Positions 1 to 44,944 of a DNA stretch of 64,000 nt are shown here, in pieces. The notes beneath the pieces were generated by a model. That model made no database searches. It saw only the letters and a list, made by a program, of their open reading frames with translations, and had not been told where the DNA came from. The translations under genes were made by a program, and so were the position numbers. This DNA is from Hamiltosporidium tvaerminnensis FI-OER-3-3. Taxonomy: Eukaryota > Fungi > Microsporidia. Location: positions 310,001 through 374,000 of the forward strand of contig CM061248.1 in NCBI GenBank assembly GCA_022605425.2, given 5' to 3'. Numbering within the stretch: the stretch's first letter is position 1; each line of letters opens with the position of its first letter.

Positions 1-1510
1 ACTGACTTTCTTATTGATCGCTTCATGTATTGTTTGATTTTTCATTTTTATGTTGAAAAGATATCTATCTCTTCTTGCGAGAATAAAATTGGACATTGTA
101 ATGCGTCATAAGAGCGATAAGTTTCGAACACTCGCCAAACATTACCGTCTCTTCGAAAGAAAACTATATCTCGAACGTTAAATTCAGTTCCAATGATAAC
201 AATTACTACTTCATTAATTTTTTGATCGTTGTTTTTCTTTCGGGTTTGCCGGCTGGTGTTAGTCTGCTCTAATAAACCATAACTGTCAGCTGGCATTCGT
301 TCAATATTTGTCTTAAACAGAACGACTAGATAGTTGTGTGGATCAAATAAAATTTATAATGCAGCAATAATCTATCAATAAGTGTTAGTATTTATCCGAC
401 AACGTATATCCATTTCTTTATCACTGGTTCCCATAGAATAAATTTGAAGGAATTTATGATCTGAATTTAATATTGATAGTAATAATCCAGCTCAATGATA
501 TATTCGTCCTGGACTTTGTACGTAACAAATAATTTTAACGTATAATTAAAGTTGCACTCAAATGATGATATTTGAAAACTTAAAAATGCATAAATATATT
601 TGCCAAGAAATGTTTCGATTGTATTGTATCGCATGACAAATCAGTGGATGATGGTTCCGGTTAAGAATTTAATTCCGGTAATTTTACTTTTCACCTGCAC
701 AGCACATTCCTGGGTTTCGGTCAAAATTTCAGTGCAAAATTAAACGCACAAACATTTTAATTTTTCTAAAAAAGACATAACCATAAAGACCGTAATTATA
801 ATTAGCCTAATATTGAACGAAGAAAAATTTATTTTAGCGTATAATGTTCTTCTAATTCAAATGTTGCGTTCTCGATTGGTTCTCAGTCTTGCTTTTCGTC
901 GTTATTTTGTTTCATTAGAACGAGAGTGTGCAGTATATAATTGACCGAGAGCTGATCTTAATTTTCGAGACTCTTCTGTTTTATTAGAGCGGGGTTATGT
1001 ATTTAGTAATCAAGTTTTATCCAATTTTTGTTCCCTTTGTTCTTCTGTTTTAATTGAACGGACATGTGCAGATACTTTTAGAATGGCGCACAATCTTCGG
1101 TTTCATTTCTTTTTCCCCCAATTACTCACCGTGTCGGGTGCAGAATTGGCTTGGAGTATTCTCTGCTTATCGTAAGAGGCGACTAAAAGGAACTGGTCCT
1201 CTATGTTGGGGTTGGGCGTAGGGCTTAAAATCACCCTTTAAAACCACCTTATTACGAAACCCGAAAAGGTAAACAAATCCTATAAATAAAAGACCAACGG
1301 GTGGAATTACTGAGGGAGGCTAAGGCTCTTGTAGGACTTTAGTACCGAGGATAAATAAATAAAATAAAAGTTGTTTCTCAAGCCTATAACAACATTTTCT
1401 TTCTTTCTACCTTTATAGATCAAGAATGTTTTTCCGTTTTTTAGGCATAACTTCTTTAGTCACAACTTCCTATCTATTATTTTTAAAAAAAGTAGAAAAG
1501 GATAGATTGA
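1..1510 (-). mobile_element. Degenerate Helitron, 5' part of the Rep/helicase gene (runs off the window's left end)
   Basis: Minus-strand fragments match Helitron Rep-region motifs: PGMCCAG..KVKLPEL (~660-720) and NEVVIVIIGTEFNVRDIVFFRRDGNVWRVFETYRSYDALQCPILF (ORF 48-296). Probable ORF start MPKKRK at 1448; possible 5' TC terminus near 1510 (tentative). Many stops and frameshifts. Confidence 0.8.
1124..1369 (+). mobile_element. Non-autonomous RTE-derived SINE-like element with structured 5' head, inserted in the Helitron
   Basis: GC-rich island. Head with stems and TCGTAAGAGGCGACTAA; RTE-type 5'UTR motif GGGGTTGGGCGTAGGGCT (1208-1225); RTE-type 3' end GAGGGAGGCTAAGGCTC..GGACTTTAGTACC; (TAAA)n tail 1351-1369. 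Aligns with the element at 43890-44088. Confidence 0.65.
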
Positions 1511-1789
1511 AGGTAAAAACCAAATAAAAGCTATAAATAAAAATTATAAATACTAACACTCTTTTAATCGATAAGCACTTTAATAACACCTCTTTAAACT
1601 AGTAACACTTATTTTAATAGCATTCTTTAAATACTTCAATTCTGATTTAATCCTTTGCATACATCGCTATATATTAATATTATTTGGAATCACCTCCTTT
1701 TATTAGCGTCTTTAAAAGAAATCTAGTAATAAGCACTTTTCTCAATTTACCTAATTATAGAAACTATACCCCTTTATTTAAAAAAAATA

Positions 1790-1985
1790 TTTCCTTTTTT
1801 GAAAATATATTTTTTTTTGAACATATATTCCGTTTTTGAAAATATATTTTTTTTTGAACATATCATCCTTTTTTGAAAATATATTTTTTTTTGAACATAT
1901 ATTCCGTTTTTGAAAATATATTTTTTTTTGAACATATATTCCCTTTTTGAAAATATATTTTTTTTTGAAAATATCATCCCTTTTT
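1790..1985. repeat. Minisatellite, 37-bp period (18+19 sub-units), ~5 copies
   Basis: GAAAATATAT recurs at 1801, 1838, 1875, 1912, 1949. Confidence 0.95.
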
Positions 1986-2176
1986 TTTGTAAAAAAATTT
2001 CTTTATTTACTGTTTAAGACACACATAATATACATTTTTATCTATAAAAAACAATATTTTTCAGTTATCACATGATAATTTCCAAGGAACAAATTAAAAT
2101 GCATTTAAACAATATTATATAAAAATCTGACAAAAATAGAAAAATTATGATATAATCATCGAAAATTAATACAAAA

Positions 2177-3484
2177 ATGGAAATTGCAAAAATCTTGTTT
2201 GAAAAAAATATAAAAGGGAGTTTTTTTTCTAAAGATATGAAATATTCAAAGGTAAGGATATTTTATTTTCTGTGCATATTTTTTGCTATTTCAGTTGTTT
2301 CTTATGAAATAATATTCATGAAAAAATATATAAATGATCTTTCTAATTCAACTGAAATATTCCAGGAATCGAAAATTCTAACACAATTATATGATTCAGT
2401 AAAAGATATCGTAAAAATCGAACAAACAAATATAACAGAAAAATATATAGCGCGTTTATGGTTACAAATATACGAAATATTAACATGTTTAGTGATTTCA
2501 CTCATATTTATTTCAAAAAAAGCACGAAAAATTATATTTAAAAAGTTAAATGAAAGCAATACAACCGAAATATCATTTCTAACTTTGAAAAAATCTGAAA
2601 TATTGTATTTTACACTTTTCGTAATTCTCATTTTCATCTCTACAATTATTAAATACTTACTCTTTGGTTGTAGAATAGGATTCGATGCTTTTGATTTTCG
2701 ATCTCGAATCAAGCAAGATATACCAATAATTGTTATTATACCCTACTCTAGTTTGTTTTTAGCATCATTGTTTCTTAAATTCTGGAAAAGAAAATATCTT
2801 TACATTTTGATAATAGGATTGATTATATATACACCTATCGTTAGAAATTTTAAAAAAATGGGAGATCCTACAATCGCAGGATACGAGAGAATAGACCCAA
2901 CAACACTAGACATTCAAATACAAGAAGCAATAACCAAATGCGAATTAGGAAATGATATTTTTGTAAAGAAAACCGGTAGTTTTTTTACGAATGCTTTCTT
3001 TGCAATAAATTTCGTTACAAAACATATAATATTAGACGGTGGAATTTTTAAATACAAATATGCTATAGAAGGTATAATATCTCACGAACTTGGACATGCC
3101 ATGGAAGCACGATTCATCCTATTTGCAACTCTTACACTACAAATTCTCACCTTTGTTTCTATTTTGTTTATTATCGATTGTTTGGTTTCGAAATATTTTG
3201 TAGACGAAAATGTTTCTAGGGATTGTTCGAGTATAATCCTTTATCTTTTCTTTTTAAGCTATTTCAAAGTCTGTTCAAAACCTATGGATAATATTTTGTC
3301 ACAAATATTCGAATTCAGAGCAGATTCTTTTGCTAAATCGCTCTCTCAGCATATTCCTCTGGCTCATTCTCTTTTCTTTATCTCGTTTAACAAAGCGCCT
3401 TTTGTATCAAGCAAACTGTACAGTACTTTGCTTTACACACATCCAAGTACTTATGACAGACTAAAAAAATTAGATTTAAAATAA
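2177..3484 (+). CDS. STE24: M48 zinc metalloprotease, CAAX prenyl protease 1 (Ste24)-like
   Basis: 435 aa, multiple TM helices, NAFFA, HEXXH (SHELGH), EFRADSFA, THPSTYDRL. Confidence 0.85.
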   Translation: MEIAKILFEKNIKGSFFSKDMKYSKVRIFYFLCIFFAISVVSYEIIFMKKYINDLSNSTEIFQESKILTQLYDSVKDIVKIEQTNITEKYIARLWLQIYEILTCLVISLIFISKKARKIIFKKLNESNTTEISFLTLKKSEILYFTLFVILIFISTIIKYLLFGCRIGFDAFDFRSRIKQDIPIIVIIPYSSLFLASLFLKFWKRKYLYILIIGLIIYTPIVRNFKKMGDPTIAGYERIDPTTLDIQIQEAITKCELGNDIFVKKTGSFFTNAFFAINFVTKHIILDGGIFKYKYAIEGIISHELGHAMEARFILFATLTLQILTFVSILFIIDCLVSKYFVDENVSRDCSSIILYLFFLSYFKVCSKPMDNILSQIFEFRADSFAKSLSQHIPLAHSLFFISFNKAPFVSSKLYSTLLYTHPSTYDRLKKLDLK

Positions 3485-17503: not shown

Positions 17504-19831
17504 ATGTATATTTCCTTAGAAGGAACACCTCAAGCTGATTGGTTTTACTGCGGGCTTACGTATTTGATACCGAAAGGAATTCCACGAAGAGGCTCTGACT
17601 ACAGGCCAATCACTTGTATGTCCAACCTCTATAAGTTAACGACAAAGTGTGTAACGAAAGTCGTTCAACTTGAAGTGGAAAGGCGAGGGTTACTTGCAGA
17701 GAACCAACTAGGGGCGGTAAGAGGTGTGCAGGGAGCGAAAGAGCAGGCTCTACTGAATATTGCCTTAAATAAAGAGTATGGAAATAATCTTAAGGCAACA
17801 TGGATTGATGTTAAAAAAGCTTATGATTCAATAGATCATGCTTATTTAACTCAATGCATTGAAAACCTTAATTTACCTGATTGGATCCTGAAATTTATTA
17901 AGGTAATTATATCAAAATGGAAAATTGATATATCAGTAGGGCCTGGAAAAATCATGAGCAAGAAGATTGATAGAGGGATTCTACAAGGAGATAGTCTGTT
18001 CCCTTTGTTATTTGTGTTGTGTATGGATCCATTAAGCCGAAAGCTTAATGAAAAATACACAAAAGTGACAGTACAAACAGATGCAGAATCCCATTCTACT
18101 AATCATCTCTTGTTTATTGATGATCTTAAGCTCCTTGCAAAAGACAGCTCCACATTGAGTGCTATGACAGGCGAGGCAAAGGAATTTTTAGAGGTAATTG
18201 GCTTAGAGATTAACAAAGAGAAGTCAGCCACAAATGATACGTGTTGTGAAGATACTGCTACTCTTCTAGAAGGTGTTAGTGTTTACAAATATTTAGGAAT
18301 AATAGAAGATAGCAGAGGAATCCCAACACGTAGCTCATTTGAAGAAGTACAAAGCAAACTTATATCAAGAGTTGAAAGACTTTGTCACACTAGATTAAAT
18401 GCAAAAAATTTATCTTCTGCAATCAATCAACATGCGATATCGTTAATCAACTATCACATAGGAGTACTTCGACTTGAACCGGCTGACTTCTCTAAGTTAG
18501 ATGATGCAGTGCGTGCGGTGTTGGTGAAAAATAAGATACATCTCCGCCCAGGATGTAAAGAGCGTTTATACTTTCCTAGAACAGAACTTGGAAGAGGCCT
18601 ACATAGTGTTGAGTTGCGAAGCGAACATTTGCTTCTGCAAATCTTGGATTGTCTGGAAAAAAGTAAAGAAATATCAACTAGACGAGCAGCAATCCTCAAG
18701 GTGGAGAATAATAATAAAACCCATCTTGCACTAATAAAAGGCTTCTTAAAAGTAAAGTACAGGTTGGTAGAAGAAGTCACTAAGAAAAGTTTAGAAGAAG
18801 CTCAACTTGCAAAACTATATAACGAAATAGAAAAACGAAAACTCCATTCAAAGTTATATAATGCAAGAAAAAATGAGCTTGTGAGTGTTAGTGACTCTTC
18901 AATATGGCTAAAGAGAGGAAATATTAGGCCACGAAATGAAGCTGTGTTCAGCTATATCCAGGATAGAAATGTATTCTGGGGAGCAGATGGTGTGTGTCAA
19001 CATTGCGGGAAGTCTGGTAAGACTGTGGATCATCTAGCAACTAGATGTGAAAAAATGCTAGGCCATGATTACACTAGACGGCATAATGAAGTGGTTAGAT
19101 GCCTACACCTTCTCCTTCTTAATAGATATAAGTTTAAGTCTTCAAAACGAATAAGGAGCCACTCAGTTCAAGAAATTCTTGATAATGAGTATGCAGAGAT
19201 AAGAGTGGACACCAGAATTAAAACTGATGTTAAAATTCGGAATAACAGACCGGACATATTTATTTTAGATAAGAAGAAGAATAAGATAACACTCATTGAA
19301 GTAGGAATCACTTCCCAAGATTCACTTCAAATAGTTGAAACTGAAAAACTTAGGAAGTATGACCTGCTAGCCAATGAGTTGGGCCTTATTTATAAGTGTT
19401 GTGTTGAGATAATCCCTTATGTGATGACCTGGGACGGTATTGTGACAAAATACCATAAATCTCATCTTAAAAGACTAGAAATACCCATGAATGTAGAAGC
19501 ATACATTCAGTCTATAGTACTTAAAAAGACAGTCGAAACTATTTCCTTTGATCGACGAAGAGGACTTGAGTCAGGACTAAATGCCGAAGAGAGCTGGGAG
19601 AGAGCGTCAATGGGTGTTATTATGAGATCAGAGATGCATGAGGAACCAATACCCCCTTTAAAAGCAGCGAAAACAGAGGAAGATGGTGCCAAAAATTTTA
19701 AACCAAAATATAAAGCCCCCTTTATTTTACAAGGAGGAACCACTTTAGAGGAACCGACCAATAACATAAATGAAGAGTCGAATTTGGAAGAAGAGACAAA
19801 AGTGGTCAATGAGGTAGAAGAAAACATGTAA
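17504..19831 (+). CDS. Retrotransposon reverse transcriptase / restriction-like endonuclease ORF (N-terminally truncated)
   Basis: YRPITC, WIDVKKAYDS, GILQGDSL, LFIDDLKL, YKYLG, GRGL, CQHC..H....C, RHNEV, NRPDIF..LIEVG, K..KY. Confidence 0.95.
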   Translation: MYISLEGTPQADWFYCGLTYLIPKGIPRRGSDYRPITCMSNLYKLTTKCVTKVVQLEVERRGLLAENQLGAVRGVQGAKEQALLNIALNKEYGNNLKATWIDVKKAYDSIDHAYLTQCIENLNLPDWILKFIKVIISKWKIDISVGPGKIMSKKIDRGILQGDSLFPLLFVLCMDPLSRKLNEKYTKVTVQTDAESHSTNHLLFIDDLKLLAKDSSTLSAMTGEAKEFLEVIGLEINKEKSATNDTCCEDTATLLEGVSVYKYLGIIEDSRGIPTRSSFEEVQSKLISRVERLCHTRLNAKNLSSAINQHAISLINYHIGVLRLEPADFSKLDDAVRAVLVKNKIHLRPGCKERLYFPRTELGRGLHSVELRSEHLLLQILDCLEKSKEISTRRAAILKVENNNKTHLALIKGFLKVKYRLVEEVTKKSLEEAQLAKLYNEIEKRKLHSKLYNARKNELVSVSDSSIWLKRGNIRPRNEAVFSYIQDRNVFWGADGVCQHCGKSGKTVDHLATRCEKMLGHDYTRRHNEVVRCLHLLLLNRYKFKSSKRIRSHSVQEILDNEYAEIRVDTRIKTDVKIRNNRPDIFILDKKKNKITLIEVGITSQDSLQIVETEKLRKYDLLANELGLIYKCCVEIIPYVMTWDGIVTKYHKSHLKRLEIPMNVEAYIQSIVLKKTVETISFDRRRGLESGLNAEESWERASMGVIMRSEMHEEPIPPLKAAKTEEDGAKNFKPKYKAPFILQGGTTLEEPTNNINEESNLEEETKVVNEVEENM

Positions 19832-40677: not shown

Positions 40678-40795
40678 AGCTACGGCCATATCCAGAGTAA
40701 AGCACCGGAAATCGTCAGATCTCCGAAGTTAAGCCACCGAGAGCCAGGGTAGTACTAAGTAGGGCGACCGCTTGGGAACCTCTGGTGCTGTAGTT
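40678..40795 (+). rRNA. 5S rRNA
   Basis: AGCTACGGCCATA.., GATCTCCGAAGTTAAGC (box A), TAGTACT, GGGAA; terminal stem AGCTAC/GTAGTT; T-rich Pol III terminator; TATAAATA ~28 bp upstream. Confidence 0.95.
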
Positions 40796-41149
40796 TTGTT
40801 TTTTTCCAAAAGATGTAATCCTAGTTTAATTTTATTAAGATTCAATAGAGAATATTTTTTCTTTTATCATTAAACTTAAGGACAGAAATGATTTTTGTTT
40901 TTTTATAAATATAATACTAGTTAAATAACAATTCGATCTTTAAAAGTAATTAATGGGTTTTTAAGATGATTTAAACTTTTAGTTTTTAAATTAATTAGTA
41001 TTTATACGAATTCTTTTGATGTTTATAAAAGAACTTGAAGTATAGATGGGGAATTAATTTAATATTTAAGTGATTTAAAAAACCGAGCTAAACGTGTATT
41101 CAAAAGTATAAGCTTCATCTTAAAAATCAAATTCGTGTTTTTTTTCGCA

Positions 41150-42540: not shown

Positions 42541-43889
42541 AATCTTGGAACATTACCTATATGCTGAATAAATATATAAATATTTCAAGTTGTATTACAT
42601 TATGGCACAAAAAATAATCCGTTTTTTTTAGCTGGACTCAATTATACCCATATTAAATAGTATACTGTATTATTACTACGATAAAACGATTCTTCATATG
42701 ATAAAGATTTTTGAATAAACATTGAATCAAACTGTAAATAGAATATAACTATATGTTGAACGTCTTTTAAAAGTAAAACATTACCATAAATTCTTGAGAA
42801 GCTGCTGTTTCACTTAAATTTTATTCAATACAAAAAAAAATACAGAAATTAAAATGTAAGGCAGAAATTTTAAGTCAAAGCCCCGATTCAAATCTGATTT
42901 ATTTATAACAGCGCATATTTCGAAAAAAAGAGCAATTTAAATTTGTTTTCATGACATTACGCAGTTTTAGGTTACATATAAATAACTGTTATCTTAATAC
43001 TACGCCTCTACCTCCTAGATACCTACATCCAAAATTATTTCATGTAAAAAGTTTTTATAACATAATTTATGCGCGAAGCAGTATCCGGTGCTCAGTAAAA
43101 ATCTGTTGCATGAATATGATCGTAGGTTGACTCCTGCCTAGACTTCCATGTGCCTATGCAGCATTCCCACTTACTCTACACTTTCCGAACCCCATAACTT
43201 CATGCTAAAATATATTTTGGCGCGTTACATATAATCTAATTAGACGTCGCAACTTCATACCAACAAGTATAACCTGCTACTTATATTTTCAGTCTTTAAA
43301 ATGTTTTTTTTATTTTTTTCTCGGGCGCAAAGTTTTCTAACCGAGTGACAAGGTTTTATAACCATACTTTGAATGCTAATTACGTTCAACTTCAGCCTCA
43401 GTCTACAATCTAGTTACATAAAAAACTATTAAATATATTAGCGAAAAAGGTTTCGCCATTTATTGGACTTCCTCTTCTCAAAAAATCCCATAAAACAATC
43501 TAAAATGTAGTGTGACTTTATTCATACCAAAAATCTAAACAATGATCTTTAAATCAATTTCAAAAACCTATTTCTGAGCCTTGATTTTTTATTTGGTCAT
43601 CTTCTCTCCCTCCACCACTTCAATGTAATATATAAAAAGTCGCAGAATGAAAAATTTTTCTTTTTTATACTTTCGCTTCAAAATTTATCTTGCGACAAAA
43701 TATATTCCGCTCATATTTTTATATTTGACCCATCAATTATATTAGAAACATTAATTTTGTAAGGTAATTTAGTAATTGAGGTGACTAGGCATTATTATAC
43801 CGACAAACCAATAATTGTAAGTTCTATTTAAATGATTTAAAATATAAAAGTCGCCATATCTTAAAATACATCAATAACACAACTATTTT

Positions 43890-44088
43890 GCTACTACTAC
43901 TAAATAGCGCTAAAGCTCTTAAAGAGTCCGGACCTCCTTAACGATTTTTTTAATTTTTATCATTTCGTTTCATTTTCGTAGCAATATGCTTTTGTGAGAT
44001 ACTCCTGTTAGCTTAATACCCAACCCTCCTCCGCTATCCAGGCTTGGTACCAGCAGATCAGAACTCATCGTTTCTCTGGTGAAGTTAA
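43890..44088 (-). mobile_element. Non-autonomous RTE-derived SINE-like element headed by a twister ribozyme, 11-bp TSD
   Basis: ACAACTATTTT (43879-43889) / ACAACGATTTT (44089-44099); GGGTTGGGTATTAAGCTAAC 5'UTR motif; RTE-like 3' end; (TAG)4 tail. Confidence 0.8.
44018..44088 (-). ncRNA. Twister ribozyme (type P1, somewhat degenerate)
   Basis: UAA-CUUC-ACC-[P3 CAGA..UCUG]-CUGG-UACCAAGC-CUGG-AUAGC-GGAG-GA-GGGU-UGG follows the twister consensus; P2 CUUC/GGAG and P4 CUGG/CUGG pair. Confidence 0.78.
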
Positions 44089-44218
44089 ACAACGATTTTA
44101 ATGTATTTTCATATATTATAGCAATAATTGGTGGTTCGTTTAATATTTCATTAAAAAAATGTTTAATTTATATTTTAATTTGTATTTTCATTTAAATTTA
44201 ACTCTTGTGCCCAAAGTT

Positions 44219-44944
44219 ATGGAATCATATAAAGAACGGAAAAAATGGCACGAAAACAGAAAGTATTATATTCTATTGTCTCTTTATTCACTTTTATTAC
44301 ATCTCTTTAGTTTTTTGCTTCTTTTATTTATTATCTTCTTTCATACTTCGTTTTCTAATACAAGTATAGATTATAAGAAATACATTACAATTTATTTTCT
44401 TAAGATTACACCAAATCTTATATTATGTTTCTTCGATATATTTACATCAAGCAGTGTGTTGAATATTTTATTACTTCTACTAATCATATTTCTTCAAACA
44501 AAAGAAATAACTGGATTGCTAAAGAATGCGAGTTACGTCTACAATTCGAATATTATGAATCTAATTAGAATTTTTGTACCAATGAATGAAAAATATATTA
44601 TTAATATTCTTATCTTAAATCTTGTTTATAACACAGTATTTCTTCTTCTAATTAGAATATTTAGAAGTCATAAACACAGAATATTATTTTTATATTTATA
44701 TTTTTCTCTTCTTCTAAAACCATTGTACAACAATGAAATATATTGTTATATTGTTTTATTTATATTTAGAATTTTTTTATATAAAATAATAAAGATCAAA
44801 AAACACATAAATATTTACAATGTGCTTCTACTTATATATTTGACAACAGTAACAGAAATAGTTATTTCTTGCTTACACCTATGTTTCTCACTAACAAATA
44901 TTGAAATGTTAAATATCAGAAGTAGTTTCAGCAAATATATTTAA
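44219..44944 (+). CDS. Hypothetical multi-pass membrane protein
   Basis: ORF 44159-44944 with several hydrophobic helices; start placed at the ATG 44219 because of the upstream GCCCAAAGTT motif. Confidence 0.65.
   Translation: MESYKERKKWHENRKYYILLSLYSLLLHLFSFLLLLFIIFFHTSFSNTSIDYKKYITIYFLKITPNLILCFFDIFTSSSVLNILLLLLIIFLQTKEITGLLKNASYVYNSNIMNLIRIFVPMNEKYIINILILNLVYNTVFLLLIRIFRSHKHRILFLYLYFSLLLKPLYNNEIYCYIVLFIFRIFLYKIIKIKKHINIYNVLLLIYLTTVTEIVISCLHLCFSLTNIEMLNIRSSFSKYI

Follow-up and report, generated by a model that had tools for sequence, protein, structure and literature searches.

This locus raises the question of how a short, non-coding insert came to start almost exactly at the predicted cleavage site of a self-cleaving ribozyme. 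The stretch of DNA analysed, referred to here as the window, comprises 64,000 nucleotides of Hamiltosporidium tvaerminnensis FI-OER-3-3 (contig CM061248.1, positions 310,001 to 374,000), and all coordinates below are window positions. An earlier, sequence-only reading had taken the host for an apparent microsporidian, which agrees with the five 1303-nt SSU rRNA genes of the genome, all matching the microsporidian SSU model end to end (1208 bits). The same reading had described a 199-bp minus-strand unit with a (TAG)4 tail and an 11-bp target-site duplication (TSD) with one mismatch, and these were found at the positions given: the insert occupies 43890-44088 on the minus strand and is bracketed by 11-bp duplications that differ at one position. 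We consider it likely that this insert is a fossil copy of a non-autonomous non-LTR retroposon that shares the ends of a LINE, was processed by a twister ribozyme, and was moved in trans. Its parts, in the 5' to 3' direction of the element, are as follows.

44089..44099, minus strand: 5' target-site duplication, AAAATCGTTGT (direct reading and TSD search; 11 bp, 1 mismatch).
44087..44088, minus strand: two T that separate the duplication from the predicted cut, ribozyme positions -2 and -1 (twister-model alignment and TSD search).
44020..44086, minus strand: twister core as retained after the predicted cleavage, from A+1 to the P1 3' strand (RF03160 match; degenerate).
43945..44019, minus strand: 5'-UTR-derived segment in common with the LINE 5' end, with a GCTAAC-type motif directly after the ribozyme (BLAST against LINE copies).
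43903..43952, minus strand: 3' module in common with the LINE 3' UTR, consisting of a small hairpin and GCGC..A (comparison with LINE 3' ends).
43891..43902, minus strand: (TAG)4 microsatellite tail, which is (GTA)n in other copies (direct reading and copy alignment).
43879..43889, minus strand: 3' target-site duplication, AAAATAGTTGT (direct reading and TSD search).

The two T at 44087..44088 belong either to the flank or, as extra nucleotides, to the 5' junction, and the 3' module is presumed to be the recognition site for the LINE reverse transcriptase (RT). An ORF check found no coding capacity in the 199-bp unit, no internal promoter was seen in the short element, and a permissive Rfam scan of 601 nt around the insert returned no tRNA, 7SL or 5S RNA matches within the unit. 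Terminal inverted repeats are also absent from it. Two neighbouring features were recorded. A solitary 5S rRNA gene is present at 40678-40796 (plus strand, 85.7 bits, full model), and a 261-aa ORF without a Pfam match (44159-44944, plus strand), read from the strand opposite to the element, begins at a distance of 60 nt from its 5' duplication, so that the insert occupies what would be the upstream region of this ORF.

When the whole window was searched at the Rfam gathering thresholds, the only match was the 5S rRNA gene, and no twister was reported. In the permissive scan, the model RF03160 (twister-P1; gathering score 67.2 bits) matched the minus strand at 44091-44020 over its entire length (model 1-68 of 68), with 31.2 bits and E 9e-5; the twister proposed from the letters is matched along the whole model, at a score below the Rfam cut-off. 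The alignment places the cut between U44087 and A44086, and the insert begins 2 nt upstream of it, in keeping with the previously described start about 2 nt from the U^AA site. Read helix by helix, the core runs P2, T2, P3, P4 with its loop, J AUAGC, P2', GAGGG and UUGG, where the T1/T2 pairing scheme applied is what we take to be that of the published twister structures. The lack of a good 5' P1 strand, also noted from the sequence, is evident: the 5' strand (UGUU) and the 3' strand (UUGG) show no pairing beyond one wobble pair. Likewise, the GCC>ACC and UCCC>UACC changes are real and are accompanied by further core changes. G12 is replaced by A and T2 is broken; the first C of the loop CCC is replaced by A and T1 is weakened; the 3-bp P4 includes two G-U wobbles, and AUAAA reads AUAGC, while P2 is kept. 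With at least six conserved core positions changed, the window copy is probably inactive as a ribozyme.

Across the genome, 31 matches to RF03160 were found, each over the full model (1-68), with scores of 17.8-43.9 bits and a best E of 1.7e-7; eleven have E < 1e-3. None of the 31 reaches the 67.2-bit cut-off, and low-level matches to the model (E up to 10) also occur in 10 of 14 control genomes. The majority consensus of the 31 independent heads equals the Rfam consensus at 32/32 strongly conserved (upper-case) positions, and keeps the core nucleotides UAA, GCC, the P4 loop GUCCCAAGCC, AUAAA and GAGGG. The 5' strand of P1 is derived from the flank and pairs at chance level only, in 46% of cells (31 copies, 4 P1 pairs) compared to 42-46% in slid controls. 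Covariation among the 31 genomic copies (P1-P4, T1 and T2) was not above that of shuffled controls, as would be expected if copies decay neutrally after insertion, and so it lends no support to the fold. Minimum-energy folds of single copies were also no better than those of shuffled sequences (window copy, z 0.04). Support comes instead from compensatory changes in P2, P3 and P4 between lineages. P2 is CUCC/GGAG in the Hamiltosporidium family and in contigs L069 and L107, and CCAA/UUGG in an abundant metagenomic family (L069 and this family are described below); P4 is CCG/CGG as against CCU/AGG; the P3 stems, 5-12 bp long, differ from lineage to lineage and are unrelated in sequence; and the pseudoknots T1 and T2 are perfectly complementary in intact examples.

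A DNA search of the 21.6 Mb genome (17 contigs) gave 28 matches to the unit at 72-85% identity, of which 19 are near full length and others are 3'-only or 5'-only. Together with a second query and the twister-model matches, the copies number about 30-40. When they were aligned with 60 nt of flank on each side, homology was seen to begin at (T)AACTCCGCC and to end at GCGCCAATTA followed by (GTA)n, and the flanks were unrelated, save for three copies. These three (L010, L013 and L016, on three contigs) have identical-looking flanks on either side, indicating that the insertion was later multiplied within a larger repeat or segmental duplication. To find target-site duplications, the 30 nt before A+1 were compared without gaps to the sequence that follows the tail, and the best match was taken. 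They vary from 9 to 18 bp and are clear in 13 short copies and in 4 long copies (the LINE loci described below); for the fourth long copy (L063) the algorithm chose a spurious TTTTTG, and the duplication was read by eye from the sequences.

A paralogous empty site was also found. Copy L006 sits within a paralogue of the RT element at 17504-19831 of the window, and its flanks match window positions 19337-19411 and 19392-19477; GTGTTGAGATA occurs once at the empty site and twice around the insert. The RT element itself (plus strand) has a 775-aa ORF with an RVT_1 domain, and belongs to a family distinct from the twister-headed LINE, which removed it from consideration as a partner of the short element. 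Its family is a very abundant one: the genome has at least 150 RVT_1 matches, many of them with identical scores and intact frames of about 1255 aa. It looks like a young family, unlike the twister-headed family, which looks extinct.

The boundary of the window copy is shared by the family. In 17 insertions (13 short, 4 long), the duplication ends 0-3 nt before A+1: the gap is 0 nt in eleven, 1 nt in two, 2 nt in three (including the window copy) and 3 nt in one. The 5' ends of the family are clustered at the predicted twister scissile bond. In 8 of the 11 copies with no gap, the duplication closes with an A that may just as well be counted as A+1, and this overlap looks like a one-base microhomology at second-strand joining. 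In the alignment of copies, the columns upstream of -1 have background composition. The -1 base should derive from the target or be untemplated, yet T is mildly enriched there (18/31 independent copies compared to 37% expected, p 0.013), which may reflect a nick preference on the second strand or nucleotide addition at the 5' junction. A clean 5'-OH end alone explains neither this enrichment nor the 6/17 junctions with 1-3 nt before A+1.

Apart from the short copies, six twister loci are homologous to one another over about 3.1 kb, with the twister as the exact starting point, and carry the decayed remains of an AP-type endonuclease and of a reverse transcriptase. About 40 copies of this LINE are present, with an element length of about 3.05-3.1 kb and a (GTA)n-like tail. 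Pfam searches of the short LINE pieces gave only weak Exo_endo_phos and RVT_1 matches, and foreign full-length endonuclease+RT proteins (926-989 aa; Exo_endo_phos and RVT_1) align over LINE positions of about 320-3080. The layout reconstructed from these alignments is a twister, a leader of about 120 nt, a single ORF of about 920 aa, a short 3' UTR and a simple-repeat tail. We refer to the LINE as RTE-like on the basis of this architecture and of a naming proxy, rather than of a tree; the proxy is the UniRef name 'Craniofacial development protein 2', borne by some relatives, which we take to be one given to RTE/BovB-derived ORFs. The autonomous RTE with the same ends that had been anticipated from the window copy does have a counterpart in this RTE-like LINE, with the same twister head and 3' end, although only as decayed copies: among 40 endonuclease matches the longest open frame is 221 aa, none above 184 aa lies downstream of the six twisters, and no intact LINE was found. 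Another candidate partner, a 931-aa RT ORF on contig 13 (L068, 57600-62000), lacks a twister and is not similar to the twister-headed LINE. It represents a different family with an intact ORF, and on several contigs such elements are located close to the contig end.

The short element corresponds to the first ~150 nt of the LINE joined to the last ~55 nt. Its 5' part matches the oriented LINE loci at about 130-280 (BLAST), and the same ~55 nt follow the RT C-terminus at four independent LINE 3' ends (L023, L026, L027 and L028). Four of the 3'-only matches to the unit turned out to be LINE copies truncated at the 5' end, in which the match is immediately preceded by sequence coding for the RT C-terminus, and truncation at the 5' end of LINE copies is as expected of target-primed reverse transcription. 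Two LINE copies, L048 and L055, have the P3 loop of the short element, and on this ground they probably represent its parent subfamily. The earlier description as a retroposed SINE-like family holds with regard to retroposition, given the duplications, the tail, the 5'-truncated LINE copies and the empty site, but not with regard to class. Its head is the 5' UTR of the LINE, without a tRNA, 7SL or 5S match, and a SIDE-like element, or an internally deleted derivative of the LINE, describes it better than a classical pol III SINE.

Relatives of the LINE are numerous outside this genome. The closest named relative of its endonuclease piece is a Hamiltosporidium tvaerminnensis protein (75% identity), and a representative library holds 3704 relatives, the best of those outside Hamiltosporidium being 35-47% identical. 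Full-length relatives are single-ORF proteins of about 930-1030 aa, found on contigs of about 3.1-3.5 kb or in insect genomes. Eleven related LINE loci from insects and other samples were searched for a twister within 1.5 kb upstream, and nine lack one. The two exceptions are contigs L072, which begins inside a twister, and L069 (3212 nt), with a twister at 12-96 (58.6 bits, E 2.5e-11; below the 67.2-bit cut-off) that precedes, by about 215 nt, an endonuclease+RT ORF of 926 aa. L069 has an (ATG)n tail, and shares with the Hamiltosporidium element a GGGCTAAC-type motif after the twister. A scan of JGI metagenome contigs with a twister-core pattern retrieved at least 120 contigs, and most of the matches listed belong to one family. 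Mutual homology in this family starts at N^AACCAAGCC, where an apparently intact twister is predicted to cut, and runs for about 220-290 nt; RT sequence was found downstream in 1 of 80 copies (L076-L155; e.g. Ga0056126, Ga0056108 and Ga0209259). This family may represent a second short retroposon with a twister head, from a set of animal-associated samples.

Taken together, these features suggest the following cycle. A copy would be transcribed by read-through from outside, and its type-P1 twister head would fold and cut between U-1 and A+1, as the anatomy and the precedent in Schistosoma suggest. The cut would strip all upstream host RNA and leave an RNA starting with AAC. The endonuclease and reverse transcriptase of the LINE, acting in trans, would then recognise the common 3' hairpin and (GTA)n tail and copy the RNA into a nicked, AT-rich target; the sharing of 3' ends is observed in the copies, while the steps that we infer are self-cleavage, transcription by read-through and the recognition in trans of the 3' module. 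The insertions themselves show the cDNA ending at A+1 and joined either via the 1-nt A microhomology or with 1-3 extra nucleotides, with duplications of 9-18 bp, and they show that a new copy keeps the catalytic core and draws its P1 5' strand from the new flank, as seen in the chance-level pairing of P1. As no intact LINE partner was found (open frames of 221 aa at most in 40 copies), mobilisation of the short element is historical.

Three other explanations were weighed against this reading. The LINE and short element may be a real pair in which the 5' end is a transcription start or some other processing site, and the head serves RNA stability or translation of the LINE. The six junctions with 1-3 extra nucleotides and the T enrichment at -1 fit this explanation, and clustered 5' ends are to be expected of all SINEs or LINEs that begin at a fixed point. 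What makes it rather unlikely, in our judgement, is the nature of the boundary, which lies inside the ribozyme, exactly at the scissile bond. The P1 5' strand is absent from the element in every case, and all other conserved parts are kept. The same boundary is seen in the long and the short elements, in the unrelated metagenomic N^AACCAAGCC family, and in the schistosome element Perere-3, where cleavage has been shown experimentally (PMC8501958).

It could also be argued that the resemblance to a twister is due to chance, or is a relic, and that the head is a plain LINE 5' UTR in which a ribozyme was never involved. This would agree with the scores of all genomic matches being below the Rfam cut-off, with the low-level matches (E up to 10) in 10 of the 14 control genomes, and with the near-zero z-scores of the minimum-energy folds. 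We regard it as very improbable in view of the best whole-genome E of 1.7e-7 and the 11 matches below 1e-3, the agreement of the consensus at 32/32 conserved positions, the 58.6-bit twister of the related LINE L069, and the compensatory changes in P2, P3 and P4 between lineages, T1 and T2 being intact. Still less credence can be given to a DNA-level repeat (a MITE or segmental duplication) in place of a retroposon. The common flanks of L010, L013 and L016 do indicate that some copies were spread as part of a larger duplicated segment, but the unit is without terminal inverted repeats, its duplications of 9-18 bp adjoin a (GTA)n tail, and its 3' end is common to an RT-encoding element with 5'-truncated copies, so that this explanation is already contradicted by the data in hand. 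The preferred reading remains that of a twister-processed LINE derivative moved in trans.

The precedent invoked in the sequence-only reading, in which twisters define the 5' ends of RTE-type elements, is a real one. As Liu et al. (2021, PMC8501958) showed, Perere-3 of Schistosoma mansoni carries twister variants at its 5' end that cleave in vitro and in reporter constructs; its tail is (GTAA)n, and its TSD adjoins the AA of the cut site and supplies the 5' strand of P1. The Hamiltosporidium family has the same anatomy, with a type-P1 twister at the very start of an endonuclease+RT LINE that has a single ORF, a TSD abutting the AA at the cut site, a flank-supplied P1 5' strand, a short tandem-repeat tail, (GTA)n in place of (GTAA)n, and no known internal promoter. 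The two differ in host (a microsporidian versus a flatworm) and in abundance, with tens of copies in an apparently extinct family here and hundreds in Perere-3, and PMC8501958 describes no counterpart to the dedicated non-coding derivative of about 200 nt. Cleavage, co-transcription and translation effects were demonstrated for Perere-3, whereas the Hamiltosporidium family is known here from its sequence.

Non-autonomous derivatives headed by a ribozyme are known from other LINEs. The R2 SIDEs (short internally deleted elements) bear an HDV-like ribozyme (Eickbush and Eickbush 2012, PMC3414825), as does NARTc, the non-autonomous derivative in the NARTc/L1Tc pair of Trypanosoma cruzi (PMC3383444). 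Like the short element described here, they keep the 5' ribozyme of the parent LINE together with its 3' RT-binding end and are mobilised in trans, as would be the case here, but the ribozyme is HDV-like in those elements and a twister in ours. R2 is also site-specific in rDNA and uses a restriction-like endonuclease, whereas the Hamiltosporidium elements occupy AT-rich sites of varied sequence and have the kind of duplication that an AP-type endonuclease typically produces. The Sm-alpha SINE-like elements of schistosomes, which carry hammerhead ribozymes (Ferbeyre et al. 1998, as reviewed in PMC6765202), are also short non-coding retroposons with a small self-cleaving ribozyme (predicted in our case). 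They differ in having a hammerhead, pol III transcription and tandem arrays, as opposed to the twister, singly dispersed copies and LINE-derived head found here. Among the papers searched, twister ribozymes and microsporidia were joined in none besides an unrelated Rfam release paper. What is new is the microsporidian host lineage and the short derivative; the mechanism and the twister/LINE pairing were known.

That twister-headed RTE-like LINEs have, from microsporidia to animals, a widespread and as yet undescribed class of twister-headed short retroposons as their non-autonomous partners is a tentative idea that we put forward as a possibility and do not favour at present. Three pointers lead to it: the module of a twister plus a GGGCTAAC-type motif that is common to Hamiltosporidium and to L069, a LINE from an unrelated sample; the abundant animal-associated metagenomic family of about 220-290 nt that starts exactly at N^AAC; and the possibility that the microsporidian lineage may have acquired the LINE/short-element pair horizontally from an arthropod.

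The only biological role of eukaryotic twisters met in the literature search is the 5' processing of Perere-3, in a single flatworm. The same anatomy, found independently in a microsporidian, supports 5' processing as a general role rather than a schistosome peculiarity. The LINE has it and so does the internally deleted derivative, and related LINEs of other samples likewise bear twister heads. A twister head, like the HDV-like heads of R2 and L1Tc, can pass to parasitic short elements. For microsporidian genomics, a defined LINE/short-element pair is added to the repeats of a large-genome species, and the combination of duplication, tail and cut site provides a clean marker for dating old retrotransposition.
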